A stretch of 64,000 nt of DNA from Mobula hypostoma (Eukaryota). The translations under genes were made by a program, and so were the position numbers. The stretch is taken from positions 2,046,001 to 2,110,000 of the forward strand of contig NC_086109.1 in the NCBI RefSeq assembly GCF_963921235.1, in the 5' to 3' direction. Positions 4,222-34,480 of this stretch are shown here, in pieces (the first letter of the stretch is position 1; every line of letters begins with the position of its first letter). The notes beneath the pieces were generated by a model. That model did not search any database and was not told the origin of the DNA. It was given only the letters and a program-made list of their open reading frames with translations.

Positions 4222-4524
4222 CGCACACCTCCAGTCGTATTCTGTTCTGAGTCTGTGCTCCTGAACTTGATGTAACAGTCACCTCATAATCACCAGTGTC
4301 TTCTCTCCGTAGATCACGGATTTCCAGACTGAAGTTCCCGGGATGAAAAGTTATCCGTCGCTTGTACTCCTCAGGACCGAAGAAGGAAATGTGTCCATTT
4401 GCATATTCTACTATTGTGGTTCCTTTTGATCTCCACACCACCTGAGAAATGTCCAGCCCGGCTGTAATCCCAGCAGGTAGGTAGACCAACTGTCCCCGTG
4501 CTCCTTTCACGGTTCCCATCCATT
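4222..4524 (-). CDS. Ig V-set exon V1, cysteine-less CD2/SLAM/CEACAM-N type (internal exon)
   Basis: Acceptor ttgtctcctcag, donor GTGAGT, 303 nt, phase 1-1; WMGTVKGARGQLVYLPAG...VVWRSK...RRITFHPGNFSLEIRDLRREDTGDYEVTV; no B/F-strand Cys pair. Confidence 0.9.
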
Positions 4525-5580
4525 CTGAGGAGACAAGAGGAGGCAGTCAGTAGGTGAGTTCAGTGACTGGAGCAGGAATCAGAGTGAGGGGGGTGTTGGG
4601 AGGGTGTTTCCCCCTCCTGTGGGATCTAGAACAAGGGCACAGTTTCAGAATAACTGACCATAATTTCTGACAGAGCTGAGGAATGATTTCCCCTCTCCAA
4701 GGATCAGGAGCCTATGGAATTTTCTCCCCCAGAGAGGTGCTGAGTCACTGTATTCAAAACTGAGACCGAATTTTAATCTGAAGAGGAGTCGGGAATAGGG
4801 GGGTTGTTGCTCGCCACCGCTTACACACTGGAAGAGGGAGCTGGAGGGGGGGATCTTAGTGGTTCTCACGTTTAACTGTCATTCATTCTTTGGGGTACTT
4901 CTCTGTTCTTGTGGATGTTTTGTGAAGAAAAAGCATTTCAGGATGTATATTGTATACATTTCTTTGGCATTAAAATGAAACTCTGAACCTTTTAAAGAGG
5001 CAGGGAAGTGGAGCTGAGATCAGGGTCAGACCAACCCCGAATTCAGTGAATGGGGAGTCAGCTCAAGGTGGGTGAAAGGCCACTCACTGTTCCTTGGATA
5101 AAAATACAGATGGGAGGGTTAGCATGTTTGCAGATGAGATAAAGATTGCTGGTGTTGTGGATGGTGCAGGGGAGTGCCAGTAGATGCAATTGGATGGATC
5201 AGATGCCGACATGGGTGGGGAAACGTGGCTGCATGTTCATCAGGTGGTAAAGAAGGGACTTTACATGCTTGTCCTCATCAGTCGAGGCACTCAGTTCAAA
5301 ATTCAGGAAGTTATGCTCCTTCTTTAAAAACTCTGATTAGGCTGATCTGGAGTGTTGCATTCATTTCCAGCCATCCCGTTAAAGGAACAACGTGGAGGCT
5401 TTGGAGAGGGAACAGACATTTACCATCTGGGTGCCTGGACTACAAGGCATGCTGGAAGAAAAAGTTGGACAAATTTTGGTCGTTTAATCACAGTGTTGGA
5501 GTTTGCAGAGAGACCTGATAGAAGTGTTTAATATTTTTAAGAATACAGATAAAGTAATCAGATAGTATTCTTTCCCCAGA

Positions 5581-5860
5581 GGTGGCACTATAGCGTAATG
5601 GTTAGCACAACGCTTTACAATACCAGTGAACCAGGTTGAATTCCCACTGCCCATAAGGAGTTTGTACATTCTCCCCGTGTCCACGTGGATTCCCCTGCGT
5701 GCTCTGGTTTCCTCCCACAGTCCAAGGACATACCAATTGCATGGTTAATTGGTCATTATAAATTGTCCTGTGATTAGGCTGGGTTACAATCGTGGGATTG
5801 CTGGGCAGTGTGGTTCAAATCTCGGAAGGGACTATTCCCTGCTGTATCTCGATAAAATTT
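5581..5860 (+). mobile_element. tRNA-derived V-SINE (HE1-like)
   Basis: Box A/B-like TAGCGTAATGG and GGTTGAATTCC, followed by the V-SINE core gagtttgtacattctccccgtg...ggtttcctcccacagtccaaggac. Confidence 0.75.
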
Positions 5861-6701
5861 TTTAAAAAATCAAATAAGAGGAGTCCAATACCAGAGATTG
5901 TGCACTTACAGTGACAGGGGTAAATTCAAAGGAGATGTGTGGGGCAAGATTTTCTTTACACACAGAGTGGTGGGAGCCTGAAATGGGCTGTCGGGAGTGG
6001 TGGTAGAGGCAAAGGCAAACCCGTTAAACCTGGGGTGGAGGAGATTTCTCCGGCAGACGTTGCTGAGTGAGATTATTGTGAATGTGATATTACTGTTAGA
6101 GTGAGTCAGGAACCATATTGATGTGTGTGAGTGTACTGTTGTGTCTGTGTACTGTGTCACTCACTGGGACACTATATTCAGTGTAATGAACACACAGGGT
6201 CTCACTCAGCACAGCACAGCATGAAGGCTGAGGAATAAACACCTTGCTGAGCTCAGACCTCAGTCTGGGCAATTAACAAGCAGTGCCTTCTGAAAATGGG
6301 ATCCCTGAACATGACAGACCAGGCCTTTGACCTGGGGATACGGAGGGATCTGTTTAACTGACCCACAGATATAGACCGTTCAGCCCATCCACAAGTCCCT
6401 TCCACCATATTAGCCTATCTCCCGTTCCCTGTTCCCCATCTGCTCATCTCCTCCAGCCTCGGAGTCACGAGGTTCCCCATTGACAGTTTGATGCTTCACA
6501 GCCTCTGGTCCAGTCTCCGGGGATGTGGTGAGTGTGTCCTCCAGACTCACACTGACTCAGCCTCACTACGCTGGGACCGTGAGCCCAGCTCTGGACACGG
6601 GCACTCAGTGGGGCTCAGTAAACAGGGGAATACACAGGATCATTAATTGGGGTGCTTCAGGAACTGATGAAACCCGGGCCCCTCCGCAGCATCTCACTCA
6701 C

Positions 6702-7022
6702 CGTACACATCCAGTTGCATTTTGTTCTGAGTCTGTGCTCCTGAACTTGCTGTAACAGTCACCTCATAATCACCAGTGTCCTCTCTCTGCAGATCACGGA
6801 TTTCCAGACTGAAGTTCCTGGGATGAAGAGTTATCCGTCGCTTGTACTCCTCAGATCCGTAATAGTCACTGATCTTGTTTGAATATGTCACTATCTTCAC
6901 CCTGGGTGACAACCGTCTCCACACAAGCTCAACAACGTCCGGTCCGACTGGGATCCCAGGATGTAAGGACATCGACTGTCCCTGTGTTCCGTTCACAGTG
7001 TTCAGGGAATCCCCAGTCCCAG
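6702..7022 (-). CDS. Ig V-set exon V2, cysteine-less CD2/SLAM/CEACAM-N type
   Basis: Acceptor ctcttgtctcctcag, donor GTGAGT, 321 nt, phase 1-1, open; GTGDSLNTVNGTQGQSMSLHPG...LVWRR...RNFSLEIRDLQREDTGDYEVTV; NGT and NFS sequons. Confidence 0.92.
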
Positions 7023-8839
7023 CTGAGGAGACAAGAGGAGACAGTCAGCAGGTGAATACAGTAACTGTAGAATCAGAGCCGGGAGGATCACAGTTACAGG
7101 AGCAGGCCATGTGGCCCATCATCTGACTCCTGACCCTGAGAGAGACCCTGCACACAGTTCCTACATCACACAGTGAGCCCACCGGGGGAACAGAGTGAAG
7201 ACTCTCCACACCCGGCCCTGAGGAAGGGAGTTGCAGCCTGCAGCCAGATATCGATGGTCATGACAGCAGAGCACAGACATGGCAAATGGGCTCCAGTCTG
7301 GAGAAAAGGTTTGTAGTGTTTGGAGAGAGTGAACACAATGAGGGAATACGGGAAATCACCGTCTACACTGTCCCTTCACCCACTCCCAGTGCACAGGTCA
7401 TGTACAGAATGAAGCTCGTCCACCCTGTCCTTCTGCAGAGGTCGACCGGGGGGCACTGGTCCTCTCGGCTGATCCTGACAACTGGTTCTTCACAGTGACG
7501 TTGTCGGATTAAGGTCTACAATCCTTATTTTTTAATTGTCCTTTTTCTTGTGGTTTTAGCTTTGTTTGTTTGAGTTTATATTTGAATTATCACCTGTTTG
7601 TCAACTTTTAGAAAATGGGGTATCTTTGGTTCTAGCTTCCTGTCGGGGGAGAGGAAGGAGAACTGGCTGGAAGATGGTGGGTGGGGAAAGATAAAGATGA
7701 GAAAATCTGAAGATGCTGGAAATCCGAACAACACTCACAAAATGCTGGAGGAACTCAGAATGCCAGGCAGTATCGATGGAAAAGAGTGAACAGTCGATGT
7801 TTCGGGCCGAGACCCTTCATCAGAGAAAGGAAAGGGGCTGGAGAAGAAGGTATCTGATAGGAGAGAACAGAGGGTAATGGGAGAAGGGGAAGAGGAGGGG
7901 CATTTCTGTTTCAAAGGGACATCATTGTGTTTTGAGGCTGTACCCTGTGGTCAAAGGCACACCCCCCATTTGAAGCATCCTCTCCAAGTCCATCTGTTTC
8001 GGTCTTTCAATATTCAGAATCAGAATCAGGTTTATTATCACCGGCATGGGTCGTAAAATTAGTTAACTTAGCAGCAGCAGTTCAATGCAGTACGTAATAT
8101 AGAAGGAGAAGAAAAACAAATAAAATAATAATAATAAATAAGTGAATTAATTTACGTATATCGATATAGAATAGATTTAAATAGTGCAAAAACAGAAATA
8201 AATATATTTTAAAAAGTAAGGTAGTGCTCACTGGTTCAATGTCCATTTAGAAATCAGACGGCAGAAGGGAAGAAGCTGTTCTTGAATCACTGAGTGTGTG
8301 CCTTCAGGCGTCTGTACCTCCTGCCTGATGGTAACAGCGAGAAAAGGGCATGCCCTTGGTGCTGGAGGGCCTTAATACTGGACGCTGCCTTTCTGAGACC
8401 CCGCTCCTTGAAGATGTCCTGGGTACTTTGTAGGCTAGTACCCAAGACAGAGCTGACTAAATTTACAATTTACAATCCTTTGCAGCCTCTTTCAATGGGT
8501 TTCAATGATATTCCACCACACAACCCCTTGTCATTCTCCAAATCTACAGGCCCAGAGCAATCAATTATTAACTCTTTCATCTTCTTGGGCCCTTACCTCG
8601 CAAAGAAGCATAGGCTATCAATGAACTCCCATCTCCATCACCCTCTATGCTGAGCCAGATCTCGAGGTTGGACCAGGCGTGTCCGCATCATCTAATTTCA
8701 GCCTCAACATCTCTCCCCTATGTGTTTCCCAAATAAAGCTTCCAAAGAAAGGTGAGTTTTGAACCTTTGAGAACAATGGAATATTTCTCTCTATGTCAAC
8801 TTCATCACTACAACAAAACCTTCGATACTTAGACACAAA

Positions 8840-9250: not shown

Positions 9251-10206
9251 AGATGAGAGATACAACCCTGGAAGAACCCTTTCATTGCCGAGATGATTCT
9301 CATGGCTAGGGTTAAATTCAGGGATTTCTGGGTTGCATGGCTCAAAGTCCCGGAAGGGACTATTCCCTGCTGTATCTCAAATAAAAAGTCTCTAATACCA
9401 GAGATGGTTCCTTTAAAGTGACAGGGGTAAATTCAAAGGAGATGTGCAGGGCAAGATTTTCTTTACACACAGAGTGGTGGGAGCCTGAAATGGGCTGCCG
9501 GGAGTGGTGGTAGAGGCAAAGCAAACCCATTAAACCTGGGGTGGAGGAGATTTCTCCGGCAGACGCTGCTGAGTGAGATTATTGTGAATGTAATATTACT
9601 GTGAGAATGAGTCAGGAACCATATTGCTGTGTGTGAGTGTACTGTTGTGTCTGTGTACTGTGTCACTCACTGGGACACTATATTCAGTGCAATGAACACA
9701 CAGGGTCTCACTCAGCACAGCACAGCATGAAGGCTGAGGAATAAACACCTTGCTGAGCTCAGACCTCAGTCTGGGCCATTACCAAGCAGTGCCTCTGAAA
9801 ATGGGATCTCTGAACATGACAGACCAGGCCTTTGACCTGGGGATACGGAGGGATCTGTTTAACTGCCCCACAGATATAGACCGTTCAGCCCATCCACAAG
9901 TCCCTTCCACCATATTAGCCTATCTCCCGTTCCCTGTTCCCCATCTGCTCATCTCCTCCAACCTCGGAGTCACGAGGTTCCCCATTGACAGTTTGATGCT
10001 TCACAGCCTCTGGTCCAGTCTCCGGGGATGTGGTGAGTGTGTCCTCCAGACTCACACTGACTCAACCTCACTACACTGGGACCGTGAGCCCAGCTCTGGA
10101 CACGGGCACTCAGTGGGGTTCAGTAAACAGGGGAACACACAGGATCATTAATTGGGGTGCTTCAGGAACTGATGAAACCCGGGCCCCTCCGCAGCATCTC
10201 ACTCAC

Positions 10207-10527
10207 CGTACACATCCAGTCGCATTTTGTTCTGAGTCTGTGCTCCTGAACTTGCTGTGACAGTCACCTCATAATCACCAGTGTCCTCTCTCTGCAGATC
10301 ACGGATTTCCAGACTGAAGTTCCCGGGATGAAGAGTTATCCGTCGCTTGTACTCCTCAGATCCGTAATAGTCACTGATCTTGTTTGAATATGTCACTATC
10401 TTCATCCTGGGTGACAACCGTCTCCACACAAGCTCAACAACGTCCAGTCCGACTGGGATCCCAGGATGTAAGGAGACCGACTGTCCCCGTGTTCCATTCA
10501 CAGTGGTCGGGGAATCCCCAGTCCCAG
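10207..10527 (-). CDS. Ig V-set exon V3, cysteine-less CD2/SLAM/CEACAM-N type
   Basis: Same splice signals as V2, 321 nt, phase 1-1, open; 8 amino-acid differences from V2. Confidence 0.92.
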
Positions 10528-11589
10528 CTGAGGAGACAAGAGGAGACAGTCAGCAGGTGAATACAGTAACTGTAGAATCAGAGCCGGGTGGATCATAGTT
10601 ACAGGAGCAGGCCATGTGGCCCATCATCTGACTTCTGACCCTGAGAGAGACCCGGCACACAGTTCCTCCATCACACAGTGAGCCCACCGGGGGAACAGAG
10701 TGAAGACTCTCCACACCCGGCCCTGAGGAAGGGAGTTGCAGCCTGCAGCCAGATATCGATGGTCATGACAGGGAGGCAGAGACATGGCAAATGGGCTCCA
10801 GTCTGGAGAAAAGGTTTGTAGTGTTTGGAGAGAGTGAACACAATGAGGGAATACGGGAAATCACCGTCTACACTGTCCCTTCACCCACTCCCAGTGCACA
10901 GGTCATGTACAGAATGAAGCTCGTCCACCCTGTCCTTCTGCAGAGGTCGACCGTGGCACTGGTCCTCTCGGCTGACCCTGACCACTGGTTCTTCACAGTG
11001 ACGTTGTCGGATTAACATGACATTGTTGGATTAAGGTCTACAATTTTTGTTTTTTAATTGTCCTTTTCCTTGTTGCTTTAGCTTTCTTTTTGAGTTTATA
11101 TTTGAATTATCACCTGTTTGTTAACTTTTAGTAAGTGTGGTATCTTTGGTTCTAGCCTTCTGCGGGGGGAGAGGAAGGAGAACTGGCTGGAAGATGGTGG
11201 GTGGTCAGGTGGGTGGGGAAAGGTAAAGACGAGAAAATCTGAAGGTGCTGGAAATCCGAGCAACACACACAAAATGCCAGGCAGTATCGATGGGAAAGAG
11301 TGAACAGTTGACATTTCAGGCCGGGACCCTTCATCAGAGAAAGGAAAGGGGCTGGGGAAGAAGGTATCTGATAGGAGTGAACAGAGGGCAATGGGAGAAA
11401 GGGAAGATGAGAGGCATTTCTGTTTCAATGGGACATCATTGTTTTCTGAGGCTGTGCCCTGTGGTCGAAGACACCCCACCATGCACATATGAAACATCCT
11501 CTCCAAGTCCATCAGTTTCGGTCTTTCAGTATTCAGAATCAGAATCAGGTTTATTATCACCAGGATGGGTCGTGAAATTTGCTAATTTT

Positions 11590-13150
11590 GAGTTAGCAGG
11601 ACAATGCGATACATGACGATAGAGCGAAAGAAACAGAACTGCAGTAAATATATGTATAGAATGTATAATATGTATTGGAAGCTTCCTACTGGACATCTGT
11701 AGAAATTTTCAATGCTTTTCGCAGGCGAAACAAATCTCCTCAAACTCATAATGAAATGTCGTGGCTGTTCCTTATAGCTGTGTCAATATTTTATGACTAG
11801 GTTCAGTCCTCAGAGATATTGACACCCAGGAACTTGAAATTACTCACTGTCTTCACTTGTGATCACTCCCTGAGGAGTGTTTGTTCCCTCGCCTTGCCAT
11901 TGCTAAGGTCTACAATCAGTTCTTTGGTCTTACTGATGTTCAGTGCAAGTGAGTTACGGCAACACCACTCAACTAGCTGCTCCTGTACGCCCTCTCATCA
12001 CCATCTGAGACTCTGCTAACAATGGTTGTATCATCAGCAAATTGATAGATGACAGTTGAGCTGTGCCTAGCCACATGGTCATGGGTGTGCAGTAAGCACG
12101 CATCGCTGAGATGTGCCAGTGTTGATTGTCAGCGAAGTAGAGATGTTATTTCCAATCTGCACAGATTATGTCTTCTGGTTAGAAAGTTGAGGATCCAGCT
12201 ACAGATGGAGGTACAGAGACCCAGGGTGTGGAGCTTCCCAGATTTTGCAACTCAACCTGTTGACTACAATTTTGTCCAGTCATCAGCCTCTCCTTGCTAG
12301 TAGTCTCACTACTCGCTGCCTCCATTTGTAAACCCACCTCCCCATCCTCAGTGCTATCACTGGCTCCCATCCCCCTGCCAAATTAGCTTAATTCCCAGAC
12401 AACAGACCTGAAAAGATATTGGTCCCCTTCAGCTTCAGGTGTAACCCATACCTTTTGTACATGTCATACCTTCTCCGTAGGAGAGATCCCAAATAAAACA
12501 CGAGTCGCCTCTTTACCATTCTGTGGTGTGTGGAAGTAGATTTGGTACGGTCTGCTCCTACAGACTCTACCATTCCTTATCCTTGTCTGCAAACCATTCC
12601 TGCCTGATGATCTGCTGTGCCATCTGGTGGGAGATGAGACTCTCAGTGAAGGTCTCTCTGTGGAGAGACCTCGGGTGGAGAGTGGTGCACACTGTGGTCA
12701 GAATCAAATTCAGGTTTATTCATTCATTCATTATGTTCTGTTTCGTCTAACGTGGACGATCATGGTCTTGACCATGATTGCTCTAGACAAATTTTCTACT
12801 AAAGTTGTTTGCCATTGCCACCTTTTGGCAGTGTCTTTACAAGATTGGTCACCCAACTATTATTAATCCTCTTTAGAGATTGTCTGCCTTGTGTCAGTGG
12901 TTCCATAAGCAGGATTTGTGATGTGCACCAGCTGCTCAATTGAACATCCGCCACCAATCCGGTTTATTATCACTGACCAATGCTGTGAAATCTGTTGTCC
13001 AGTGCAAGGCTGCCACGAAACAACAATTACACTAAATGACAAACAATAAACCATGACAAAGAGGAATAGCAAGGTATTGTTACTGGGTCCATGGTTCAGA
13101 AATCTGATGGCGGACGGGAAGAAACTGTTCCTCAATCAGAGTGTGGCTGT
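11590..13150 (-). mobile_element. Rex1/L2-like LINE fragments
   Basis: (cagaat)n ggtttattatcac tails in reverse orientation and degraded RT-like text. Similar pieces at 8030-8460, 31750-32450, 35000-35400, 37020-37330 and 44340-44730. Clade assignment uncertain. Confidence 0.5.
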
Positions 13151-13834
13151 TCAGGTATCGAAAGGAAAGCAGACAGGCAGAGGGGTGGTGCAGCTCTGTT
13201 GGTAAAAAATGAAATCAAATCATTAGAAAGAGATGACGTAGGATCAGAATGTGTAAAATCGTTTTGGGTTGAATTAAGGAACTACAAGGGTAAAAAGATC
13301 GTGATGGGAGTTATCGACAGAATCCCAAACAGAAGTAAAGATGTTGTTGACAAAGTACAACAGCAGCCAGAAAATGCATGTCAAAAGGGCAGCATTACAA
13401 TTGTCATGGAGGGTTTCAATGTGCAGGTAGATTGGGAAAATCAAGTTGCTGCTGGATCCCAAGAGGGGGAGTTTCTGGAATACGTATGAGATCTGGTTTT
13501 AGGGCAGCTCACGGTTGAGCCCACGAGGGGATCAGCTATCCTGGATTGGATGCTGTGCAATGAACCAGTACTGAAAAGAGGGCTTAAGGTAAAGGAACAC
13601 TTTGGGACAAGTGACCATATATGATAGAATTCACCATGTAATTTGAGCAGGAAGAGCTAAAGTTTGCTGTATTGTCATCACAGTGGAGTAAAGGGAATTA
13701 CGGGGGCATAGGAAAAGAGCTGACCAAAATTGAATGCTACCAGGGATTATTGTAGAGCAGCAATGACTGGAATTTCTGGAGCAATTCATAAGGTGCAGGA
13801 TATATACATCCCAATGAAGAAGAAAAGATTATAA

Positions 13835-15972
13835 TGTCACAATGGTGGGGGATTGGGAGCAAGGGTGGACCCAAATGCAAGACACATCTTGTGAGGTTAC
13901 TTAGATTTAGTTTATTGTTCGATACCAGGAGAGCAAAGTAGAAGCAGGAGTAGCAATCTGGACAAGGACTCAGGATTACGACTAGGCTGGGACTAGGGGT
14001 CTGGGCTTGGACTCGGAATTGGATCCCAGAACTAGAGGAAACATGAAGAGGCTAGGGTATGGACTCCGAGCCCGAGACTGGGCAAGGACCCAGTAACTGG
14101 GTCTTGCCTCGGGCTCACACCCCAGAACCAGGCAAGGACATGACATGGGCTAGGCAGAGGATGAACATGGAAAACAGAGCCTCGGTCTTGGGGGAGTACG
14201 TACATGGAACCATGGACACATACACAGAACAGAGAGCCGGGACCCCTCCTTGGGTACAGGACATAGCGCCAGGACTAATGACCCTCCGCGGGGCAATGGC
14301 AAGACGGCCTGACTTACCCCACGGATGCGAGGACAAGATAAGACAAGAAATGACCCCCGCGGGGCAACGGCAAGACGGCCTGATTTACCCCACGGAGGCG
14401 AGGACAAGACAAGACCAACACGAATGAACACCAGGCAGTACCTATATAGCTCCGGCGATGGAACTAGACTGAAGTGCAGGCGGGGGCTGCATACGAGGGC
14501 TAGAGGCGAGAGGGGCACAGAAGGGATTCAGACAAGGGGTAGGACAGGAATCACAGACCGCCAGGGACAGGACTTGACTTGGTGCTTGAATGCCGCCGGA
14601 GCCAGGACTTGACTTGGTGCTTGAATGCCGCGAGGACCAGGACTTGACTTGGAACTTGAATGCTGCCAGAGCCAGGACTTGACTTGGAGCTTCCGGGTAG
14701 TGGCGAACTCTCGACTCCACCCGGGAACAGTAGACAACGGTTCTTGATTCCCTCTGGCGGGTCAACTGACAGACCCACCTCGGTGAGGAAACTTTGCAGG
14801 CTTGCTTTGGCGAGGTAACTGGACAGGGTTGCTCCAGTGAGGAGAGGCAAATTACCAGCACTCGCTTTTGCAGAGACTAGGCTTGCTCCAGCCAGATGAC
14901 ATCGGCAGATCGTACCCCGGATGACATTGCAGACGCACCCGCACCAAACGGCTGAAATCCAGAGACTATAAACTACCAGTTCAGCCGAGTGTTAATTGCC
15001 TCTGTGACGAGAATACACATAAAATTAAGATGTTTGCTGGCTTAGGTTAGCATCAGTGACATCAGCAAGTGGTCTGCCACCTGCCCTCAGGGGAAGGAGA
15101 GATAAGGAACAATGGAGCAGCGTCTGGAGATGTGTAATGAGGGGACGTGGGAGAGAGAGAGCTGTCTGGAGCGGCTCCCCCTTTGAACCCTGAACTGTTT
15201 GAAGTGATGGACAGGCGATACCCCAGCAGGGGGATAAAAAGGGACAGGTTCGCTAAGGCAAGAGACACACGCCACCCGAGGTAACGAGACCCTGGAAGTG
15301 GTACGCTTCTCACGAGTCGGTGGGAAGTACCAGACAACGGCCAGGGTGGAAAGGTACGATCAGCGGAAACCCGGTGTGTGTCCGCCCTTGCCTGGGTGCC
15401 GGGTTCACTGCAGAGGATCGACCGCATCTGGAGGAGGGGTCACAGTCGGTGACCTCAGGTGACATTACCAAGGACCTGCCCAAAAGCTGCTTGTGAGCCA
15501 TATTGTCGGTCTGTGAGTGAAGCCGTGTCTGAATGATCAGTTGTTCCTGTTCCCTCTCTCTCTTCCCCCACGTTGTCCATCGCCAAGGCAACGATTACTG
15601 CGAACTGAACTACTAAACTGGACTGAACTTTGAGTCACTTTGAAATTTGGTCATTTACCCCTAGACAACGATAGAGCTTGATTGATGCTGTTATCTTAGA
15701 TTCTGTGCACATGTGTGTTTATCATCGCTGAACTGTTGCATTTATTATCCTTTCGATTACTGTGTTGCTTGTTTCTTTAATAAAACTTTCTTAGTTCTAG
15801 TACTCCAGACTCCAACTAAGTGATCCATTTCTGCTGGTTTGGCAACCCAGTTACGGGGTACGTAACACCTCTAATCACCAAAGTCGAGGGACACGGGAAA
15901 ACAGGGAACCAATGGTCTGGATCGTAACATAAACAAACTAAATTTAAAGGGACCCTGATCCGGACCATGACA
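13835..15972. mobile_element. Solo LTR, family B (~1.27 kb without the nested insert), with internal 35-bp and ~70-bp repeats
   Basis: TGTCA...TGACA termini; 5-bp TSD TATAA (13830-13834 / 15973-15977); ggacttgacttgg repeats at ~14570-14690. Confidence 0.8.
15003..15867 (+). mobile_element. Solo LTR of the same family as the 17422-22333 element, opposite orientation
   Basis: Reverse complement of LTR 17422-18278; TGTGACG...CGTAACA termini; 4-bp TSD CCTC (14999-15002 / 15868-15871). Confidence 0.95.
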
Positions 15973-18278: not shown

Positions 18279-18291
18279 CTTCCCCCCTTTT
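18279..18291 (-). other. Polypurine tract of the LTR element
   Basis: AAAAGGGGGGAAG on the minus strand, abutting the 3' LTR. Confidence 0.85.
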
Positions 18292-18452
18292 AAGGATTTT
18301 TACCGGGAGGTAAAAATTACAAACATGACTACATTATTGGATACACACACAAATATGCATCTTTATCAGTTATTTGGCTAATACAGAGAATTTGAAGCTG
18401 TCAACACCTTGACAGACAGTCATCACATTTTCTGTTCCTTTTACACGTGTTA

Positions 18453-21379: not shown

Positions 21380-21455
21380 TTCTGCTGTTTGTCTTTTCTT
21401 TCTTTCGGGAATTTTAACCCAATCAATTTACTCCGTCCCAAATTTAGCGTTCAAA

Positions 21456-21474
21456 ATCGCGGACGAGAACCCCA
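21456..21474 (-). other. Primer-binding site, degenerate tRNA-Pro type
   Basis: TGGGGTTCTCGTCCGCGAT, 4 nt inside the 5' LTR, versus canonical tRNA-Pro PBS TGGGGGCTCGTCCGGGAT. Confidence 0.75.
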
Positions 21475-22359: not shown

Positions 22360-23690
22360 AGAAAGGCTCTAAAAATCAACCAGGAAATTATAGGCTGATG
22401 AGTCTGACATCAGTGGGAAAGTGACTGGAAGGTATTCTAAGGGACTGGATATATGAGTATTTGGAAAGACATGAACAATTTAAGGATAGACTGCTTTGTC
22501 TCTTGCATGGCAGGTCATGTCGAAAAAAATCTTATAGGGTTTTTTGAGGAAGTTGCCAGGAACGTGGATGAAGGCAAGGCAGTGGATGTTCTCCACATGG
22601 ACTTCAGCAAAGCATTTGACAAGGTCCCACATGGCAGCATGGTCAAGAAGGTTCGGTTTTTAAGCATCAATTTGAGGTAGTAAATTGGATTAGACATCGG
22701 CTTTGCCAAAGAAGCCAGATAGTGGTAGCAGATAGTTGGGTCTCTGACTGGAGACCAGTGACGAGTGGAGTACCACAGAGAACAGTGCTGGGTCCATGGA
22801 TAACAATGTGCTTAACTGGATCAGCAGATTTACAGATGACACCAAGATTGGGGGTGTTGCGGACAGCGAGAAAGACTATCATGGCTTTCAGTGAGATCTG
22901 GACCAGCTGGAAAAATAGGATGAAAAACGGCTGATGGAAATTAATGCAGACAAGATCGAGGTGTTGCATTTTAGTAGGAGCAACCAGGGTAGCTCTTACA
23001 CTGTGAACAGTTGGGCGCTGAGGAGTGTGGTAGAACCAAGGGATCTGGGGATACAGGCCCATAATTCATTGAAAGTGGCCTCACACATTGATAGGATCAT
23101 GAAGAAAGCTTTTGGCACATTGGCCTTCATAAATCAAAGTATTAAGTACAGGAGATGAGATGTTATGTTGAAGTTGTATAGGACGTTGCTGAGGCCTAAT
23201 TTGGAGTATAGTGCGCAGTTCTGGTCACTAACCTACAGGAAAGATGAAAGAGGCTGAGAGAGTACAGAGAAAATTTACAAGGTTGTTGCCAGTTCTGGAG
23301 GATCTGAGTTACATGGAAAGATCAAATAAAATTAGGAATTTATTCCTTGGAATGCAGATGATGCCAAGGAAATTTGATCAAGGTAAACAGAGTTATAAGG
23401 GATAGAGTAAATGAAAGCAGGTGTTTTCCACTGAGTTTGGGTGGGACCACAACTAGAGGTCATAGGTTAAGGGGGAAAGGTGGAAAGTTTATGGTGAACA
23501 TGAGGGGAAACTTCTTCATTCAGAGGGTTGTGAGAGTCTTGAATGAGCTGGTGTGTGCAAGTTCGATTTCAATATTTAAATGAAGTTTGGAAGGGAGTGG
23601 TAAGGAGGTCTCTGATCCCAGAACAGATTGATGGGAGCAGGCAGTTTAAATCGTGCAATCGAGTAGATGGGCCAAAGGGCCGATTTCTGT
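22360..23690 (+). mobile_element. Degraded CR1 RT and 3' region
   Basis: AVDVLHMDFSKAFDKVPH, WRPVTSGVPQ and HIDRIMKKAFGTLAFI fragments with frameshifts. Confidence 0.8.
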
Positions 23691-26458
23691 GCAGTATTTC
23701 TCTATGACTCCATGCCCTTTTGCACTCCTAATCAGCTTTGTAAGTGTACTCCTACATGCCCTGTAGTCCTCAAGGCATATTCCAGGTTCAGGAGACTCAG
23801 GACCCACACAGCCAGGTTCAGGTAAAGTTATTACCTTCAACCACCAGGCTCTTGAAACAGAGCTGATAACTTCACTGAAATTTACTCGCTCCATCACTGA
23901 ACTTGTCCCACAAACTAAGGGCTCACTTTCAAGGACTCTTCACCTTGTACTTCTGATATTTATTGCTATTTCTTTGTTTATTATTTTATTTCATTTTTTG
24001 CACTTTGTTGTCTTTTGCACATTTATTGTTTGTCCATCCTGTTGAGTGTGATCTTTCATTGATTCTGTTATGTTTCTTGGATTTACTGAGCTTTCACACA
24101 TGAAAACAAATCTCAGGATTGTGTCTGGTGACATATATGTACTGAGATGATAAATTTACTTTGAACCTTGAGGATCATCTGCATATTTCTTCAGAGGGCC
24201 TTACTGGACACACCCAACTAATTCCATCCCATTCAATACCCTGGCTATCTCAGGATATTTAGCCTTGACTTTGATCCAGGATGCTGGCACAGATGTTATG
24301 TCAAACATACTTTTCAGCCCGCCGTCATTTGCAAGCTCGAGGAGTTGATCTCCTTCCAGCGCTGACTTGGTGATGCGCGGGTAATGACCTCGAGTGCGTT
24401 CAAGTTCAACAGTGGGTGTGACAGGGAATGAGGAAAGGTGCAGCTCACTCCTATCGTTTCATATCGCCAAATCATATCGTTGCCTCGCGGCCCAGAGCAC
24501 ATGCTTTGTGGCTTGGTGGTTGGGGACTGCTGATCTATATATTTCTTCAGAAGGCTTTACTGGACACACTAAACTAATTCCATCCCATTCAATACCCTGG
24601 TACCGTGGCAGTCCCAGTCTCCATCAGGGACCTGTAATAACCCTATTATTCCTACAGCTATCTGTAACTTCTCTAATTCCCACTGATTACTGGCACCTAC
24701 AGCACAGTACATCCCTCAAAGTGATCATCCACTATTATTTCTAAATTGTACATGTACAGCCTCACTGGCTGACCCTCCAGAAATGGACTCTCCAAGTATT
24801 ACCATGATCAAAACTGGTGGCTACGAGCTTGTGGGCACTATGGAGATGTGGCTGAAAGAGGGTCAGAGCTGGGAGCTAAACATCCAACGATATTCATCTC
24901 ATCAAAAAGGCAGGTTGCTGGGCAGAGGGGTGATTTGGTAAAAAGAATGAAATAAACCCATAAAACAGATTGATGAGAGGATCAATAGATTAAGAACGTT
25001 TGTGGATGGAGTTGATGAACTTCAAAGGTCACAAGACCCTGAAGGGACATGTACAGGCTGCAGAATAGCAGTCAGGATGAGGGTACAAAAGGCATGTGAG
25101 AAACGCTGCCTTTCTCATGTGCTTTTTCTCCCAGGAGATAGAAAAGGAACGTGCGAAAGGCAATGTTACAATGATCATGGAGGACTCCCACAAGAATGGA
25201 CTGGGGAAAATCAGGCTGAGAGTGAACTCCATGCAAAAGAACTGGTGGCTTTCCAGAGCAACATAAGGTAGATCACACAAGGGAAGAGGCATGTCTAGGT
25301 CTGGACATTGTATAAAGAGGTAGACTTGATCAGGGAGCTTAAGGAGATAGAATCCCTTGCAGGCAGTGACCACAATCTAGTAAACTTCACCATGCAGTTT
25401 GAAGGAAACTGAAATCTAATGTAATGGTATTAGTTATCGAATCATTCAGCACAGACACAGGTAGTTTGATTTGACTGGTCCAAGCCAAATGAAATTACCC
25501 ATCTCAATCGTCAGTGTTTGGCCCTCAACCTTTCAAGCTTTTCTGATCTATGCACTTGTCCTACTGACATTTAGAAGTTGCTATTTTATCTGCCTTATCC
25601 CTTTCTCTGGCAGCTGATTCTACATAAGTATTTCCCAGTGTGTATTAAAGTTGTCTCCTCAAGTCCCTCAAATCTTAAATGTTGCCTCTCAAGTGCCTCT
25701 TCAATAATTCCCCTCAGATCTTAAACTTATGTCTCAAGTCTCAATTCTCCAGAAGTGGGGAAAAAGGCAGAGTATATTCACCCAATCAATGCTCCACGAT
25801 TTCATATCTCTCTAAAAGATCATGTCTCAGTCTCCTATGATCTGAATAAAGTTCTAACTTGTCCAACATCTCCTGGTGATGACCAAGGATAACTACAGAA
25901 GCATGAGAGAGGAGCTGGCCAGAGCTGATTGGAAGGAATTGATGATACAAAGATAGGTGGAGGAGCGGGTAGTGTTGAGGAAACAGGGAGCCTGCAGAGA
26001 GACTTAGATAATTTTGGAGAATGGGCAAAGAATTGGCAAATGAACTACAATCTTGGAAAGTGTATGGTCATGCACATTGGTGGAATAAATCAACAGGCAG
26101 ACTATTACTGTGTTTAGATGGGGAGAGAATTCAAAATGCAGAGATGCAAAGAGACTTGGGATTCCTTGAGCAGGACACCCTGAGGTAATTGAAGGCAGAT
26201 CGGTTCTTGGTTAGCCAGGACATCAAATGTATGAGGAGATGGCAGGGGAATATGGAAGCTGGAGGAATTGGATCAGCCCATGATTGAGTGGCAGAGCTAA
26301 ATGGCCTCCTTCTGCTTCTATAGTTATTGAATTATTCAGCACAGACACAGGTGATCCAATCCAAATGAAATGACCCATCCCAATTGGCAGTTTTTGGCCG
26401 TTAACCTATTAAGTTTTTCTGATCCATGCACTTGTCCAACTGACTTTTAGAAGTTGCT

Positions 26459-29400
26459 GACATGAGGAAATCTGCAGATGCTGGAATTTCAAGCAACACA
26501 CACAAAAAAACACTGGTGAACGCAGCAGGCCAGGCAGCATCTCTAGAAAGAGGTGCAGTCGAAGTTTCGGGCCGAGACCCTTCGTCAGGACTAACTGAAA
26601 GAAGAGATAGTAAGAGATTTGAAAGTGGGAGGGGGAGGGGAGATCTGAAATGATAGGAGAAGACAGGAGGGGAGGGGTGGATCTAAGAGCTGGTGAAGGG
26701 AGTGGATCATGGGACGGGAAGCCTGGGGAGAAAGAGAATGGGGAAGGGGAGCCCAGAGGGTGGAGAGCAGGCAAGGAGTTATACTGAGATGGACAGATGG
26801 AGAAAAAAGAGAGAAAAAAAATGGGGGAAAAATAAAAAATATATTTTAAAAAATATATTAGATAAATAAATAAGGAATGAGGTGTGAAGGGGAGGAGGGG
26901 CATTAACGGAAGTTAGAGAAGTCAATATTCATGCCATCAGGTTGGAGGCTACCCAGACGGAATATAAGGTGCTGTTCCTCCAACCTGAGTGTGGCTTCAT
27001 CTTTACAGTAGAGGAGGCCGTGGATAGACATATCAGAATGGCAATGGGACGTGGAATTAAAATGTGTGGCCACTGGGAGGTCCTGCTTTCTCTGGCAGGC
27101 AGAGTGTAGGTGTTTAGCGAAATGGTCTCCCAGCCTGCGTCGCGTCTCGCCAGTATATAGAAGGCCGCATCGGGAGCACCGGACGCAGTATATCACCCCA
27201 GCCAACTCACAGGTGAAGTGTCGCCTCACCTGGAAGGACTGTCTGGGCCCCTGAATGGTGGTGAGGGAGGAAGTGTAAGGGCATGTGTAGCACTTGTTCC
27301 GCCTACAAGGATAAGTGCCGGGAGGGAGATCAGTGGGGAGGGATCGGGGGGGGGGAAACGAATGGACAAGGGAGTTGCATAGGGAGCGATCCCAGCGGAA
27401 AGCAGAAAGTGGGGGGAGGGAAAGATGTGCTTAGTGGTGGGATCCCATTGGAGGTGGTGGAAGTTACGGAGAATTATATGTTGGACCCAGAGGCTGGTGG
27501 GGTTGTAGGTTAGGACAAGGGGAACCCTATTTCTAGTGGGGTGATGGGAGGATGGAGTGAGAGCAGATGTGCGTGAAATGGGAGAGATGCGTTTGAGAGC
27601 AGAGTTGATGGGGGAGGAAGGGAAGCCTCTTTCTTTAAAAAAGGAAGACATCTCCTTCGTCCTGGAATGAAAAGCCTCATCCTGAGAGCAGATGCAGCAG
27701 AGTTGTGAGAAGGGGATGGCATTTTTGCAAGAGACAAGGTGGGAAGAGGAATAGTCCAGGTAGCTGTGAGAGTCCGTAGGCTTTTATAGCAGACATCAGT
27801 GGATAAGCTGTCCCCAGAGATAGAGACAGAAAGATCAAGAAAGGGGAGGGAGGTGTCAGAAATGGACCAAGTAAACTCGAAGGCAGGGTGGAAGTTGGAG
27901 GCAAAGTTAATTAAGTCAACGAGCTCAGCATACGTGCAGGAAGCAGTGCCAATGCAGTCGTCAAAGTAGCAAAGGAAAATTGGGGGAGACAGATACCAGT
28001 ATAAGCTTGGAACATGGAGTATGCTTGGAACATGGATTTTTCCACAAAGCCAACGAAAAGGCAGGCATAGCTGGGATGCATACGGGTGCCCATGGCTACA
28101 CCTTTAGTTTGGAGGAAGTGGGAGGAGCCAAAGGAGAGATTGTTAAGAGTAAGAACTAATTCCACTAGACAGAGGAGAGTGGTGGTAGAGTGGAACTGGT
28201 TAGGTCTGGAATCCAAAAAGAAGTGGAAAGCTTTGAGACCTTCCTAGTGGTGGATGGAAGTATATAGGGACTGAACATCCATGGTGAAAATAAAGCGGGA
28301 GGTGGGCGCGGACAGGGAACTTAAAATCATTGAAAAGATTCAGAGCGTGAGAAGTGTCATGAGCATAGGTGGGAAGGGATTGAACAAGGGGGGATAAAAC
28401 AGTGTCGAGGTAGGCAGAAATAAGTTCAGTGGGGTAGGAGCAAGCTGAAACAATGGGTCTACCTGGACAGGCAGGTTTTTGGATCTAGGGTAGGAGGTAG
28501 AAACGGGAAGTGCGGGGTGTGGGAACTATTAGGTTGGTAGCTGTGGATGGGAGTTCCCCTGAGCTGATAAAGTTGGTGATGGTGTGGGAGACAATGGCCT
28601 GTAGCTCCTTAGTGGGGTCTTGATCGAGGGGTAAATAAGAGGAGGTATCCGTGAGTTAACGCTGTGCCTTGGCAAGGTAGAGGTCAGTACGCCAGACTAC
28701 AACAGCAGCCCCCTTATCGGCGAGTTTAATAGTAAGGTTAGGATTAGTGCAGAGGGAGTGGAGAGCAGAGCGATCGGAAGGAATGAAGTTGGAATGGGAA
28801 CAAGGATGGTGAAGTCGAGATGATTGATGTCCCGTCGGCAGTTAGCGACAAAGAGATTCGGAGCAGGCAGAAGACCAGAGCGGGGTGTCCATGAAGAGGA
28901 GGAGGGTTGAAGACAGGAGAAGGGGTCATCGGTAGGGGTGGGAGAGTCCTTGCCGAAGAAGTGGGCTCGAAGACGGAGCTGGTGGAAGAAGAGTTCAGCA
29001 TCATGGCGCATGCGGAACTTGCTGAGGTGTGGGCGAAGGGGGACAAAGGTGAGGCCCTTAGTGAGGACAGAGAGCTCTGCCTCAGAGAGTTCAAGGTCAG
29101 AGAGGATGGTAAAGACCCGGCACGGATGACAGTTGGGATCAGAGGGGTGAGGAGGAGGGAGGCTGGGGGTGTCAGTGGAGAGGGGAGGGTAGGGATGAGA
29201 GAAAGATGGAGCCTCTGAGGGCGCAGAAGCTGACAGTGGGATCTAGGGGAGACGGGGTTGTGGAGTGGTAGAGGGGGAAGGGGAGACAGGAGTCACAATA
29301 GCAGCACATAAAGACGCGGCCTGGAGTTCAAGGCTGGAGTAGCAGTTGGTGGCTGCAGAAGGTGTCCATGGTCGTTCCTGGAGTCCAGGTTTTGAATATG

Positions 29401-29605
29401 CCCTGGGGAGCAGGAGCTGCTGAGATTGATTTCATGCCTGCTAGCATCGGAGCCAGCAGGCTCTGGGGTCTGCAGATGTAAGATCTTGCGATCCTTGCCT
29501 AACATGACAAAGTCCAAGAAACAGCGATTGCACTTACAGATCCGACGGAGGATGAAATAACAGGTTGGACCATTACGAACAGCGAAGAAAGTGTCCCTGA
29601 GACGA
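26459..29605 (-). mobile_element. Penelope-like element (RT plus GIY-YIG endonuclease), 5'-truncated and frameshifted
   Basis: GIY-YIG ORF 26903-27229 (VIYCVRCSRCGLLYTGETRRRLGDHF); RT pieces (FLQTKGVAMGTRM; LFFHQLRLRAHFF); 10-bp TSD AGAAGTTGCT (26449-26458 / 29606-29615). Confidence 0.92.
26557..26592 (-). ncRNA. Minimal type I hammerhead ribozyme motif of the Penelope element (probably impaired)
   Basis: AGUC-CUGACGA-A-GGG(UCUCGG)CCC-GAAACUUC-GACU: core and stems I/II intact; the ACGU palindrome of stem III is changed to ACUU. Confidence 0.75.
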
Positions 29606-30344
29606 AGAAGTTGCTATTTTATCTGCCTTAATCCTTTCTCTAGCAGCTGATTCTACATAGGTATTTCCCATTGTGTATTAAAGTTGTCTCAAGTCCCTCA
29701 AATCTTAAATAAGTTGCCTCTCGAGTACCTCTTCAATAATTCCCCTCACATCTTAAACTTGTGCCTCAAGTTCTCAATTCTCCAGAAATGGGGTAAAAAG
29801 CAGAGTATATTCACCCTATCAGTGCTCCACGATTTCATAGCTCTCTAAAAGATCATGTCTCAGTCTCCTATGATCTGAATAAAGTTCTAACCTGGCCAAC
29901 ATCTCCTTGTGATGACCAAGGATAACTACAGAAGCATGAGAGAGGAGCTGGCCAGAGTCAATTGGAAGGAATTGATGATACAAAGATAGATGGAGGAGCG
30001 GGTAATATTGAGGAAACAGAGAGCCTGCAGAGAGACTTAGATAATTTAGGGGAATGGGCAAAGAAGTGGCAAATGAAATACAATCTTGGAAAGTGTATGG
30101 TCATGCACTTTGGTGGAAGAAATAAACAGGGAGACTATTATTTAAATGGGAAGAGAACTCTAAATGCAGAGATGCAAAGGGACTTGGGAGTCCTTGTGTA
30201 GGATACCCTAAAGGTTAACCTCCAGGTTGATTCAGTGGTGAAGAAGGCGAATGCAATGTTGACATTCATTTCTAGAGTTATAGAATATAAGAGCAGGGAT
30301 GTGATGTTGAAGCTCCATAAGGCACTCATGAGACCACACTTGAA

Positions 30345-30590
30345 GTATTCACTCACAACACGCTGGAGGAACTCAGCAGGTCAGGCAGCATCCATGGAAA
30401 TGATCAGTCAATGTTTCGGGCCGGAACCCTTCGTCAGGGCTGAAGAGGGAAGGAGCAGAGGCCCTATAAAGAAGGTGGGGGGGGGGGGAGGGTGGGAAGG
30501 AGAAGGCTGGTAGGTTCCAGGTGAAAAACCAGTAAGGGAAAAGATAAAGGGGTGGGGGAGGGGAAGCAGGGAATGATAGGCAGGAAAGGA
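30345..30590 (-). mobile_element. Penelope terminal fragment with degenerate hammerhead motif
   Basis: AGCC-CUGACGA-A-GGG(UUCCGG)CCC-GAAACAUU-GACU at ~30405-30441. Related fragments at ~140-270, 7700-7830, 11230-11340 and 55975-56060. Confidence 0.7.
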
Positions 30591-32459
30591 CTTGGAGTAT
30601 TGGTTGCAGTTTTGCGCTCCATATTTTAGGAAGGATATACTGACATTGGAGAGGGTTCAGAGAAGGTTCACAAGAATGATTCCAGGAATGAGAGTGTTAT
30701 TGTATGAGAAACATCTGGCAGCTCTTGGGCTGTATTCTCTGGAGTTCAGGAGAATGAGGGGGGGATCTCATAGAAACATTTTGAATGTTAAAAGGCCTGA
30801 ACAGATCAGACATGATTTCCCATGGTAGGGGAGTCCAGGAAAAGATTGCATGACTTCAGGACTAAAGGACACCCATTTAAAACAGAGGTGTGGAGAAAGA
30901 ACTTTAGTCAGAGGGTGGTAAATCTTTGGAATTTGTTGCCACAAGTGGCTGTGGAGGCCAAGTCATTGGGTGCATTGAAGGCAGAGACAGATAGGGTCTT
31001 GATTAGCCAGGGCATCAAAGGGTATGGGGAGAAGGTAAGGGAATGCAGAAACTGGAGGAATTGGATCAGCCCATGATTGAATGGCAGAACAGACTCAATG
31101 GGCCGAATGGCCTCCTTCTGCTTCTATATCTTATGGTCTGATGGGTCCCAGCATGAAAGAGAACGAAGCAGCAAAGGCAGGAGTTTCTGGGAGAAAGCAG
31201 AATTTCATCCCAAGTAAGAAGAAGGACACAAAGGGGAGGATGAAAAAATGGTGGCTGACAAGGAAGTCACAGGCAGCATAACAGCAAAAGAGAAGACATT
31301 ACAATATGGCAAAGATTTGTGTGAAGCCAAAGGTTTGGGAAAAGGATAAAACCCAACAGTCAACAACCTAAATAGCTGTACGAGAGGAGAAGATGAAATA
31401 CCACAGTAGACAATAAAAGAAGATTCCAAATGTTTTATGGGGCATGAAAAGGTTAAGAACTAGGCAAGAGAGGTTATTGGGCTACTGGAATATGACACGA
31501 GAAAAGAAGCAAAGGAGAATGAGGAAATGATGGACGAATCTCCTTATTCACAGATGGTGGTCAATCTGTGGAATTTGTTGCCAGGGAGCTCTGTGATGGT
31601 GAAGTTATTGGGTGTATTTAAGTGAGAGATCAATTGGTTCTTGATTGGTAAGGGGTTACGAGTTTCAGTGTGAAGACAGGAGAAATGTGATTGAATGACA
31701 GAGCAGACTCAACAGACCAAATGGCCTAATTCTGCTCCCGAAGCTTATGCAGTTTTGTGATGTTCTCCCTAATCGATATTACATCTCTCGTTCGTCTCTT
31801 ACCTCAACCATGGTCATACCAGTAGCATCTGTACCCCAGAACACTGAGCTGCCAGTCAGCCAGGTAGCCGTAATATCACAATCCTGTGCAGTGTGCACTA
31901 TCTGCAAAATCTGCTGTAGTCACTCACCCAAGCTACTGTGACAGGACCTTGCAAACCTGTCACCTCTCCCAACAGGAAGGATAAGAGCAGCAGTACAGGA
32001 CAACACCACCACCTGCAGGTTCCCCTCCATATCCCACAGCCTCCCTGGCCAGCTGGACAAACCACCTCCAGCCAGCTGGACAGATCATCTCCTTCTCACT
32101 GTGGCATGGAGTTCTCCACCTCACTGCAGTACACAGAAACAATGTTTGTACCATCCAGAGGGAGTCTTCACCCTGTCCCCACAGTGGCCTCCACGTGTAG
32201 TAAAGACACCTACCTTAGGCTATTGTTTAACAAACACAGATCCATCCTCTATTCCACAATTCCAAGGAAAATCATCTCCAAACTCCTAGAAATGAGACAC
32301 AACACATCCGTCTGCAACTGTATGCTTGGCCTCTTGACAACACAATCAGGAAGGAAGCACTGTGACATCCACAGCACAATTATTCTCACAGCGTTTGCAC
32401 CATGAGGAAAACCTCTCTCCAACTCTAGAGTTTGATCGAAATCATTTCTGTCTGCATGG

Positions 32460-34270
32460 ACGAAGGGAGAGAGAGCGAAAGGTAAAGGTAGTCTCTGAGT
32501 TATGAAGAGAGGTAGACAGAGCTCTGAACACTGGGAACAGGGAGCAGGATAAACAGAGCTCTGACCAGAGGGGACGGGGAAGAGGGGGTGTGGAGGGGGA
32601 CAGTGGGATTGTAGGGGAAGGAGGAGAGGAGAGGGGAAGGGGAGAGAGGTAGGGTAGTGGGAGTGGGAGAGAGGGGGAAGGGAGAGTGAAAAGGGGAGTG
32701 GGGGTGGGGGTAGAGGGGAGGGTGAGAAGGGGAGGGGGAAGGGAGAAGAGGGGAGGGGAGGGGAGAGGGGAGGGTGAGAAGGGGAGGGGGAAGGGAGAAG
32801 AGGGGAGGGGAGAGGGGAAGGGGAGGGGGAAGCATGGGAAGAAGTTGGGGAAGAGGGAGAGGGGGAGGGAGAGGTGGTATGGAGGGGGAAAGGGGGTTGG
32901 AGATGGGGAGGAGGAGAGGAGAGGGGAAGGGGAGAGAGGTGGGGTAGTGGGGGAGGGGAGAGGGGAGGGGAGAGTGAAAGGGGAGTGGGGGTGGGGGTAG
33001 AGGGGAGGGGGAAGAGGGGAGGGGGAGGGGAGAAGAGTGGAGGGGAGGGGGAAGGGGAGGGGGAAGGAGAGGGGAGGGGAAGGGGAGAGAGAAAGAGTGG
33101 GAAGAAGTTGGGGAAGAGGGAGAGGGGAGGGAGAGGTGGTATGGAGGGGGAAAGGGGGTTGGAGATGGGGAGGAGGAGAGGAGAGGGGAAGGGGAGAGAG
33201 GTGGGGTAGTGGGGGAGGGGGAGAGGGGGAGAGGAGAGTGAAAAGGGGAGTGGGGGTGGGGGTAGAGGGGAGGGGGAGAAGGGGAGANNNNNNNNNNNNN
33301 NNNNNNNNNNNNNNNNNNNNNNNNNNNNNNNNNNNNNNNNNNNNNNNNNNNNNNNNNNNNNNNNNNNNNNNNNNNNNNNNNNNNNNNNNNNNNNNNNNNN
33401 NNNNNNNNNNNNNNNNNNNNNNNNNNNNNNNNNNNNNNNNNNNNNNNNNNNNNNNNNNNNNNNNNNNNNNNNNNNNNNNNNNNNNNNNNNNNNNNNNNNN
33501 NNNNNNNNNNNNNNNNNNNNNNNNNNNNNNNNNNNNNNNNNNNNNNNNNNNNNNNNNNNNNNNNNNNNNNNNNNNNNNNNNNNNNNNNNNNNNNNNNNNN
33601 NNNNNNNNNNNNNNNNNNNNNNNNNNNNNNNNNNNNNNNNNNNNNNNNNNNNNNNNNNNNNNNNNNNNNNNNNNNNNNNNNNNNNNNNNNNNNNNNNNNN
33701 NNNNNNNNNNNNNNNNNNNNNNNNNNNNNNNNNNNNNNNNNNNNNNNNNNNNNNNNNNNNNNNNNNNNNNNNNNNNNNNNNNNNNNNNNNNNNNNNNNNN
33801 NNNNNNNNNNNNNNNNNNNNNNNNNNNNNNNNNNNNNNNNNNNNNNNNNCAGGAGAGAAGGAGATGGATAGATGGAGTACTGAACACTGGGGAGAGGGAG
33901 AAGGGTGAGAGCAGAGGGCAGAGCGGTGAGTAATAAGAGCTCTGAACACAGGGCAGAGAGCAGAGGGGCGAGGGCAGCGGGGAGAGGGGCGAGGGGCGAG
34001 GGGCAAGGGGAAAGTGATAGAGCTCTGAACACAGAGGAGAAGGGAGAGGAGAGCGGTGAGTGGAGCGGGATAGGCAGAGCTAAGAATAGAGGGGAGAGGG
34101 GAGAAGGGAGAGGCGAGAGGGGAAAGGGATAGACAGAGTTCTTAACACAGAGGGAGAGAAGAGAGGGAGAGACAGAACTCTGAACACAGGGGAGAGAGGA
34201 CAGGGAGAGACAGAACTCTGAACACAGGGAAGAGAGGACAGGGAGAGACAGAACTCTGAACACACGGGAG
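32460..34270. repeat. Polypurine (GA/GGA) low-complexity tract with internal repeats, spanning assembly gap 33288-33849
   Basis: Almost pure G/A on the + strand; 562 Ns; acagaactctgaacacaggg units at ~34150-34270. Confidence 0.95.
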
Positions 34271-34334
34271 AAGGGCGAAGCTGGAAGATCTCCCTGTTCT
34301 CTAATAACTATCGATCACCACAATCTGACCTTAC

Positions 34335-34386
34335 CCACACGGGCGACCCAGGCGGCAACACATAGCAGGGACGAGACCATCCACAT
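34335..34386 (-). CDS. Signal-peptide (leader) exon, probable first coding exon of the V-set gene
   Basis: acgATG TGG ATG GTC TCG TCC CTG CTA TGT GTT GCC GCC TGG GTC GCC CGT GTG G|GTAAGG = MWMVSSLLCVAAWVARV with a phase 1 donor, matching the phase 1 acceptors of V1-V3. Linkage to the V exons is inferred. Confidence 0.72.
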
Positions 34387-34399
34387 CGTGAAGGCGTTT

Positions 34400-34480
34400 T
34401 GTCGATCTGGAGTTTCGGAGAATCTCGGGGAAAAACAGGAAGGGACTTCCGGTTACACCCGGCCCGCCACTTCCGAAGGG
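34400..34480 (-). promoter_or_regulatory. CpG-rich TATA-less promoter with two ETS sites and a GC box
   Basis: ACTTCCGG 34445-34452, CCCGCC 34463-34468 and ACTTCCG 34469-34475, 60-90 bp upstream of the leader ATG. Confidence 0.62.

Follow-up and report, generated by a model that had tools for sequence, protein, structure and literature searches.

LOC134355363 of Mobula hypostoma as a probable V-only CD2/SLAM-type receptor gene with a duplicated N-terminal V exon

A 64,000-nucleotide (nt) stretch of contig NC_086109.1 from Mobula hypostoma (the window) carries on its reverse strand one signal-peptide (leader) exon and three V-set exons, V3, V2 and V1 in order of transcription. The region that they occupy makes up the 5′ two-thirds of LOC134355363, an annotated gene of this species, the Atlantic pygmy devil ray. 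We consider it probable (roughly 0.7) that the V exons of LOC134355363 are joined in series to encode a V-only CD2/SLAM-type receptor, with both exons of the A type (V3 and V2) included. One promoter-proximal leader exon would splice over a 23.8-kb intron to V3. V3, V2, V1 and one or two V exons beyond the window would then be joined serially, as their symmetric phase 1-1 permits, followed by a transmembrane (TM) exon and a short tail lacking an immunoreceptor tyrosine-based switch motif (ITSM). Such a transcript would encode a glycosylated type I protein of the leukocyte surface, its ectodomain consisting of disulfide-less V domains one after another and lacking C2. If it acts like CD2, CD48, 2B4 and the SLAM receptors, the membrane-distal A domain may contact a ligand on another cell in trans, and the inner V domains may act as a stalk or spacers in place of C2.

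Exon structure and gene identity

An initial annotation, made from the DNA letters alone, had described three open V exons of phase 1-1, and this description was confirmed: each exon lies between an AG acceptor (ctcctcag/) and a GTGAGT donor (/gtgagtga), stays open in phase 1-1 and matches the Pfam V-set family (Table 1). The same annotation had called these exons cysteine-less, which holds for V3 and V2 (no cysteine in either); V1 has one, at its last residue. It had also placed a single leader exon with a promoter 24 kb upstream of the V exons. The leader is indeed single-copy in the window by tblastn and lies 23,807 nt from V3, and a promoter next to it is plausible, given two CGGAAGT ETS-core motifs (34475-34469 and 34452-34445) and a TTTAAAA motif (34560-34554) read by eye upstream of the leader. 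The peptide that it had given for the leader joined to V3 is exact. Tblastn recovered no V-set copies in the 64 kb other than these three exons. Each A domain carries N-glycosylation sequons at positions 11 and 70.

The duplicated units had been said to contain no in-phase leader, and motif and calibrated scans agree, finding only the exon at 34386. No other family-type leader was detected between 4.5 and 36 kb by a calibrated scan for an ATG, a hydrophobic segment and a phase-1 donor, by tblastn with the leaders of relatives, or by a six-frame regular-expression search for the family motif. Leader candidates at 32030, 28081, 26540 and 8246 were rejected as transposon-derived or low-complexity sequences without that motif. 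Each V exon starts at a phase-1 AG acceptor, with neither an ATG nor a signal peptide of its own. A variable-first-exon cluster of the protocadherin or UGT1A type, in which the variable exons bring their own start codons and promoters and are joined singly to a common set of constant exons, was rejected, the V exons having no such start and the models joining them serially. The C2 domains of seven related proteins gave zero matches in the window, as expected from the earlier statement that no C2 exon separates the V exons. The TM exon of LOC134355363 was not found within the window, where TM-like sequence occurs only as a frameshifted relic (39.3-39.6 kb).

The gene was reached through an exhaustive protein search with V3 and then a length-matched search, in which many ray proteins were matched. 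In-silico splicing of 34386-34335, 10527-10207, 7022-6702 and 4524-4222 yields residues 1-332, exactly, of all three RefSeq isoforms of LOC134355363 (XP_062921208/09/10; P0209 is X1, P0164 is X2, XP_062921209.1, and P0208 is X3), and V3, V2 and V1 are present together in each of them. The leader is 100% identical to residues 1-17 of these isoforms and of the LOC134355361 protein (P0168), and 87% identical to the leader of Hemitrygon akajei P0003. No Logan-derived fragment of LOC134355363 was among the protein search matches.

Past the left edge of the window, the annotated models add one or two V domains, the TM segment and a tail of 40 residues. With a span of 54,360 nt, the gene has its 3′ end about 20 kb left of the window. 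The modelled TM segment has no charged residue, and the tail is conserved between Mobula and Hemitrygon (...LRSxWDKxMGKKSGTS...). TM segment and tail together are nearly identical to those of LOC134355365, a neighbour whose last V domain is identical to the fifth V domain of isoform X1. Searching for TxYxx[VIL] found no ITSM after the TM segment in P0164, P0209 or any relative of the A-B-B′ form described below, the tail of LOC134355363 being encoded outside the window.

The last residues of V1 (4222-4227, reverse strand) read EVC, a TAC to TGC change from the tyrosine that nearly all relatives have at this position, leaving an unpaired cysteine at the interdomain junction. Domain 1 of the LOC134355365 protein similarly ends KVC.

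Table 1. Features of the LOC134355363 locus in the window, with one transcript-like open reading frame (ORF) from another species; positions count from the first letter of the window unless a Logan contig is named
Feature	Position	Strand	Description
Putative 5′ untranslated region/promoter	34387..34570	-	motifs read by eye
Leader (signal-peptide) exon, coding part	34335..34386	-	52 nt, MWMVSSLLCVAAWVARV + 1 base; starts at ATG 34386, exon end 34335; phase-1 donor G/GTAAGG
Intron 1	10528..34334	-	23,807 nt as assembled, taking the estimated gap length at face value
V3	10207..10527	-	321 nt; A-type (N-terminal type) V-set exon, phase 1-1; protein domain 1
V2	6702..7022	-	321 nt; second A-type V-set exon, duplicate of V3; domain 2
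V1	4222..4524	-	303 nt; B-type (internal type) V-set exon; domain 3
Duplication unit around V3	9304..11633	-	91% identical over 2377 nt to 5777-8114
Duplication unit around V2	5777..8114	-	period 3527 nt; spacer 8115-9303 outside the repeat
Third copy of the flank found 0.5-1.1 kb upstream of V2 and V3	1..598	-	86-89% identical to 7556-8088 and 11078-11669
Assembly gap	33288-33849		562 N, inside intron 1
Purine-rich tandem array	32581-33287		262-nt period; reaches the left edge of the gap
Similar short purine-rich repeats	33950-34271		far side of the gap
Long terminal repeat (LTR)-element gag/pol remnant	18453-21379	-	822-aa open gag-pol-like ORF with SCAN and zinc-knuckle domains
GIY-YIG (Penelope-like) piece	26903-27229		in intron 1
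Relic pair of adjacent TM exons	39315-39567	-	5 kb upstream of the leader; frameshifted
Terminal coding exon	59510-59578	-	GQGEGQALKNHEKKAATNASE then stop; identical to the LOC134355367 C-terminus, one junction mismatch against LOC134355361
P0020 ORF	L001 282-2126; L002 209-2053		Logan contigs, separate sequencing runs SRR6291289/90

Domain family and architecture among rays

Against Pfam V-set, all three V domains score above the gathering threshold (E 1e-7 to 6e-11); V2 and V3 do so against Receptor_2B4 as well. A profile built from 50 ray V domains was run against the PDB sequences and matched, over the full domain, CD48 (3e-14), SLAMF5/CD84 (1e-11) and CD2 (3e-9), as well as SLAMF6, CD58 and 2B4; its matches to CEACAM proteins and to the polymeric immunoglobulin receptor (pIgR) were partial only. 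The AlphaFold model of V3 is of high confidence (pLDDT 89.4), and its top ten Foldseek matches in the PDB are all 2B4, CD48, CD84, NTB-A or a CD48 construct. Judged by profile and modelled fold, V1-V3 are CD2/SLAM-type V domains, and the three methods agree with the family comparison drawn in the initial annotation. The second hallmark of CD2/SLAM proteins, a membrane-proximal C2 domain, is absent, the annotated protein having V domains only.

Membership of the CEACAM/pregnancy-specific glycoprotein (PSG) family was rejected, as the matches are weaker, cover only the C-terminal half of the domain (about positions 58-105) and rank below CD2/SLAM, and there is no C2 domain. The V-C2-V-C2 ectodomain with ITSMs of Ly-9/SLAMF3 was not found, nor was the ITSM that marks the SLAM subfamily of SAP-binding receptors.

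Domain parsing covered 48 relatives and isoforms. A chain of leader-A-B-B′-TM, with three V domains and no C2, was found in M. hypostoma (LOC134355361, LOC134355364 and LOC134355365), M. birostris, Hemitrygon akajei and Hypanus sabinus, the last keeping its three V domains in all nine isoforms (9/9). The A type is N-terminal, 106-107 residues long, and starts AGTGxSPTTVNG as in single-V relatives; the B type is internal, 100-101 residues long, and starts EWMGTVKG. In a tree of 58 domains three position-specific clades were recovered, each with mobulid and dasyatid members, indicating that the V-only chain is older than the split of these two families and that domain order is fixed. A fixed order is as predicted for a serial multi-domain protein. 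The ancestral form in these rays is leader-A-B-B′-TM. LOC134355363 is the only A-A-B-B(-B′) gene among those parsed, and carries an extra A exon and an extra damaged B-type exon.

Outside this group, sawfish and skate models read A-A-C2 and shark models V-C2-V-C2. Rays also have V-C2-V(-C2) proteins (P0003, P0174), which share the leader type of LOC134355363, and the B-type domains group loosely, with weak tree support, with the second V of V-C2-V proteins. A Ly-9-like ancestor that lost its C2 exons would be a reasonable, if weakly supported, starting point for the V-only chain.

CD48, 2B4 (CD244), CD84 (SLAMF5), NTB-A (SLAMF6) and CD2 share with the ray protein a V-set fold without the canonical B-F disulfide. 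They also resemble it as type I membrane proteins with phase-1 exons encoded in a tandem gene cluster, but they have the form V-C2, whereas LOC134355363 has four to five V domains in a row, no C2 and an ITSM-less tail; in the last respect it resembles SLAMF8/9 rather than the SAP-coupled members. RefSeq names the Hemitrygon and Hypanus orthologues after Ly-9. Like LOC134355363, Ly-9 has more than one V domain in a SLAM-family chain; unlike Ly-9, the ray protein has no C2 between its V domains and no ITSM, and it is not orthologous in architecture to mammalian Ly-9. pIgR, with five V-like domains, is alike in having a V-only ectodomain followed by a TM segment, but its domains keep their disulfides, its profile matches are only partial and it belongs to an unrelated family.

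Rodent PSGs, members of the CEACAM family with the form N1-N2-N3-A, have several disulfide-less V-type (N) domains in a row, products of in-frame duplication of exons within a fast-evolving cluster. The parallel with PSGs suggested earlier is only one of architecture, the run of disulfide-less V-type domains being shared; the CEACAM matches are the weaker and partial ones. PSGs are secreted proteins whose last domain is an IgC2 A domain, whereas LOC134355363 has a TM segment and no C2.

Several uncharacterised teleost models (P0022, P0034, P0048, P0043) also have tandem Cys-poor V domains, 7-17 of them, and no C2, but with about 30% identity to the ray domains they are independent expansions. 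P0020, in addition, is an uninterrupted ORF in which a signal peptide precedes five Cys-poor V-set domains, with a TM segment and short tail at the end; its identity to V3 is about 33%. As transcript-like evidence, it suggests that this domain type may be expressed as V-only chains in another species, a precedent for such chains as genuine mRNA.

The gene model of LOC134355363 is public and its structure is not itself new. A literature search found nothing on SLAM/CD2 genes of cartilaginous fish, RefSeq labels for the subfamily are inconsistent ('Ly-9-like', 'unc-89-like', 'uncharacterized'), and the C2-less multi-V ray subfamily appears to be undescribed. This conserved C2-less SLAM/CD2-type subfamily of stingrays and devil rays is of modest interest as a lineage-specific variant of a known family. 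For comparative immunology it offers a modest, testable example of how domain architecture changes in an immune receptor cluster when exons are lost and others are duplicated in frame.

Duplication of the A-type exon and use of the V exons

V2 was gained through a 3.5-kb intragenic tandem duplication. V2 and V3 differ at 11 of 321 nt and 8 of 106 residues, and their acceptor and donor contexts are identical. Divergence is 3.4% in the exon versus 6.4% in the flanks (range 4.8-7.8%; Fisher p=0.04). The array extends past the left edge of the window, as indicated by the third copy of the flank at 1-598, and another A-type unit probably begins just beyond that edge, to judge from this copy. RefSeq models place a B-type exon next, so such a unit may hold an unannotated or skipped A-type exon.

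Two further pieces lie 100-280 nt upstream of the A exons (10627-10803 and 7122-7298, reverse strand) and are 95% and 86% identical, respectively, to the last 59 residues of isoform X3 of LOC134355364. The 86%-identical copy carries a stop. The match indicates that an intronic piece has been modelled as an alternative terminal exon in the paralogous unit.

The initial annotation had left two readings side by side, a V-only multi-domain receptor or one leader splicing to alternative V exons. The former is supported by the RefSeq identity and by an architecture conserved in mobulid and dasyatid rays; the latter found no support, the isoforms including V3, V2 and V1 together. On serial joining, the lack of a family-type leader in and between the units is explained by the V exons being internal, not alternatives that share one leader. 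The picture of one leader serving many V exons thereby becomes an ordinary gene structure, with no new diversification mechanism.

Several points weigh against serial joining with both A exons included. An A-A-B order occurs in no other ray model, and joint inclusion of both A exons is unique to the model of LOC134355363. In the models the fourth V domain breaks off after 77 aa, at "RREDA", where isoform X3 hits a stop; the exon outside the window is therefore damaged, and the modelling may have been forced. As XP_ records, the RefSeq proteins are computational models. The ratio of nonsynonymous to synonymous substitution rates (dN/dS) between V2 and V3 is about 1.1, from just 11 substitutions, and does not demonstrate selection on V2. 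Finally, contiguity of the two sides of the assembly gap in intron 1 is assumed.

Some of these points equally favour an mRNA of the conserved three-V form, in which V3 or V2 and the damaged fourth exon would be skipped or decaying and the models with four to five V domains would over-include exons at a recently rearranged locus. All other ray genes of the subfamily are A-B-B′, the fourth V ends early or meets a stop, the V2/V3 dN/dS is near 1, and skipping of a V exon is modelled in M. birostris, whose isoforms P0210 and P0169 read L-B-B and L-A-B (L, leader). V2, however, has an open frame, splice contexts identical to those of V3 and both sequons, is more conserved than its flanks, and is included in 3/3 annotated isoforms; we regard the three-V form as the main rival, though an unlikely one. 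Every exon being of phase 1-1, skipping always stays in frame, and some cassette skipping is likely.

A more ambitious proposal, which we hold to be more doubtful again, is that LOC134355363 displays two tandem binding domains through the in-frame A duplication, or chooses between V3 and V2 by exon skipping, as a member of an undescribed C2-less myliobatiform subfamily. If so, the V3/V2 choice would amount to receptor diversification by exon duplication together with cassette splicing, in parallel with the way rodent PSGs expanded their N domains.

A shared-leader cassette, with V3, V2 and V1 as alternative splice partners of the leader, is most improbable. The units lack a leader of their own, the joins L-V2, L-V1 and L-V3-V1 all stay in frame when spliced in silico, and the M. 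birostris P0210 model joins a leader directly to a B-type exon. Yet no annotated isoform of LOC134355363 uses its V exons in this way, domain position is conserved between ray families, the other gene units of the cluster carry their own leaders, and B-type exons are without the 'AGTGxSPTT' extension found after the signal peptide of A-type and single-V relatives. Least credible is a non-functional birth-and-death remnant making no stable protein: the damaged fourth V exon, the frameshifted relic TM exons 5 kb upstream of the leader and the heavy transposon load point to decay in the cluster, but the leader and all three V exons are undamaged and bounded by canonical splice sites, neighbouring LOC134355361 has an identical leader, and the modelled TM segment and tail are nearly identical to those of LOC134355365.

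Intron 1 and the gene cluster

The leader lies far from V3 because transposons fill intron 1, which contains LINE fragments and satellites in addition to the elements in Table 1. A coiled-coil ORF lies upstream of the LTR-element ORF, likewise in intron 1. Related genes are stretched in a comparable way, LOC134355365 occupying 44.8 kb for 378 residues and the H. akajei gene 47 kb for 392 residues. The assembly gap sits 486 nt downstream of the leader donor and crosses no exon or coding frame of the gene. Long ORFs across it were rejected as translations of low-complexity DNA.

LOC134355366 and LOC134355367, both V-C2-V, lie on the same 98-Mb chromosome and have consecutive gene numbers. The exon at 59510-59578 is probably the final one of the neighbouring gene upstream, as its C-terminal match suggests, and the leader of LOC134355363 is the first family exon found downstream of the 3′ end of that previous unit. 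The arrangement is consistent with whole gene units, all with leaders of their own, standing in tandem and evolving by birth and death. In the relic pair upstream of the leader of LOC134355363, one TM exon is of the LOC134355363/365 type and has a frameshift between its TM part and its YIRKSWDKYKGKNSGT part; about 40 nt after it comes a TM-like stretch of the LOC134355361/367 type.

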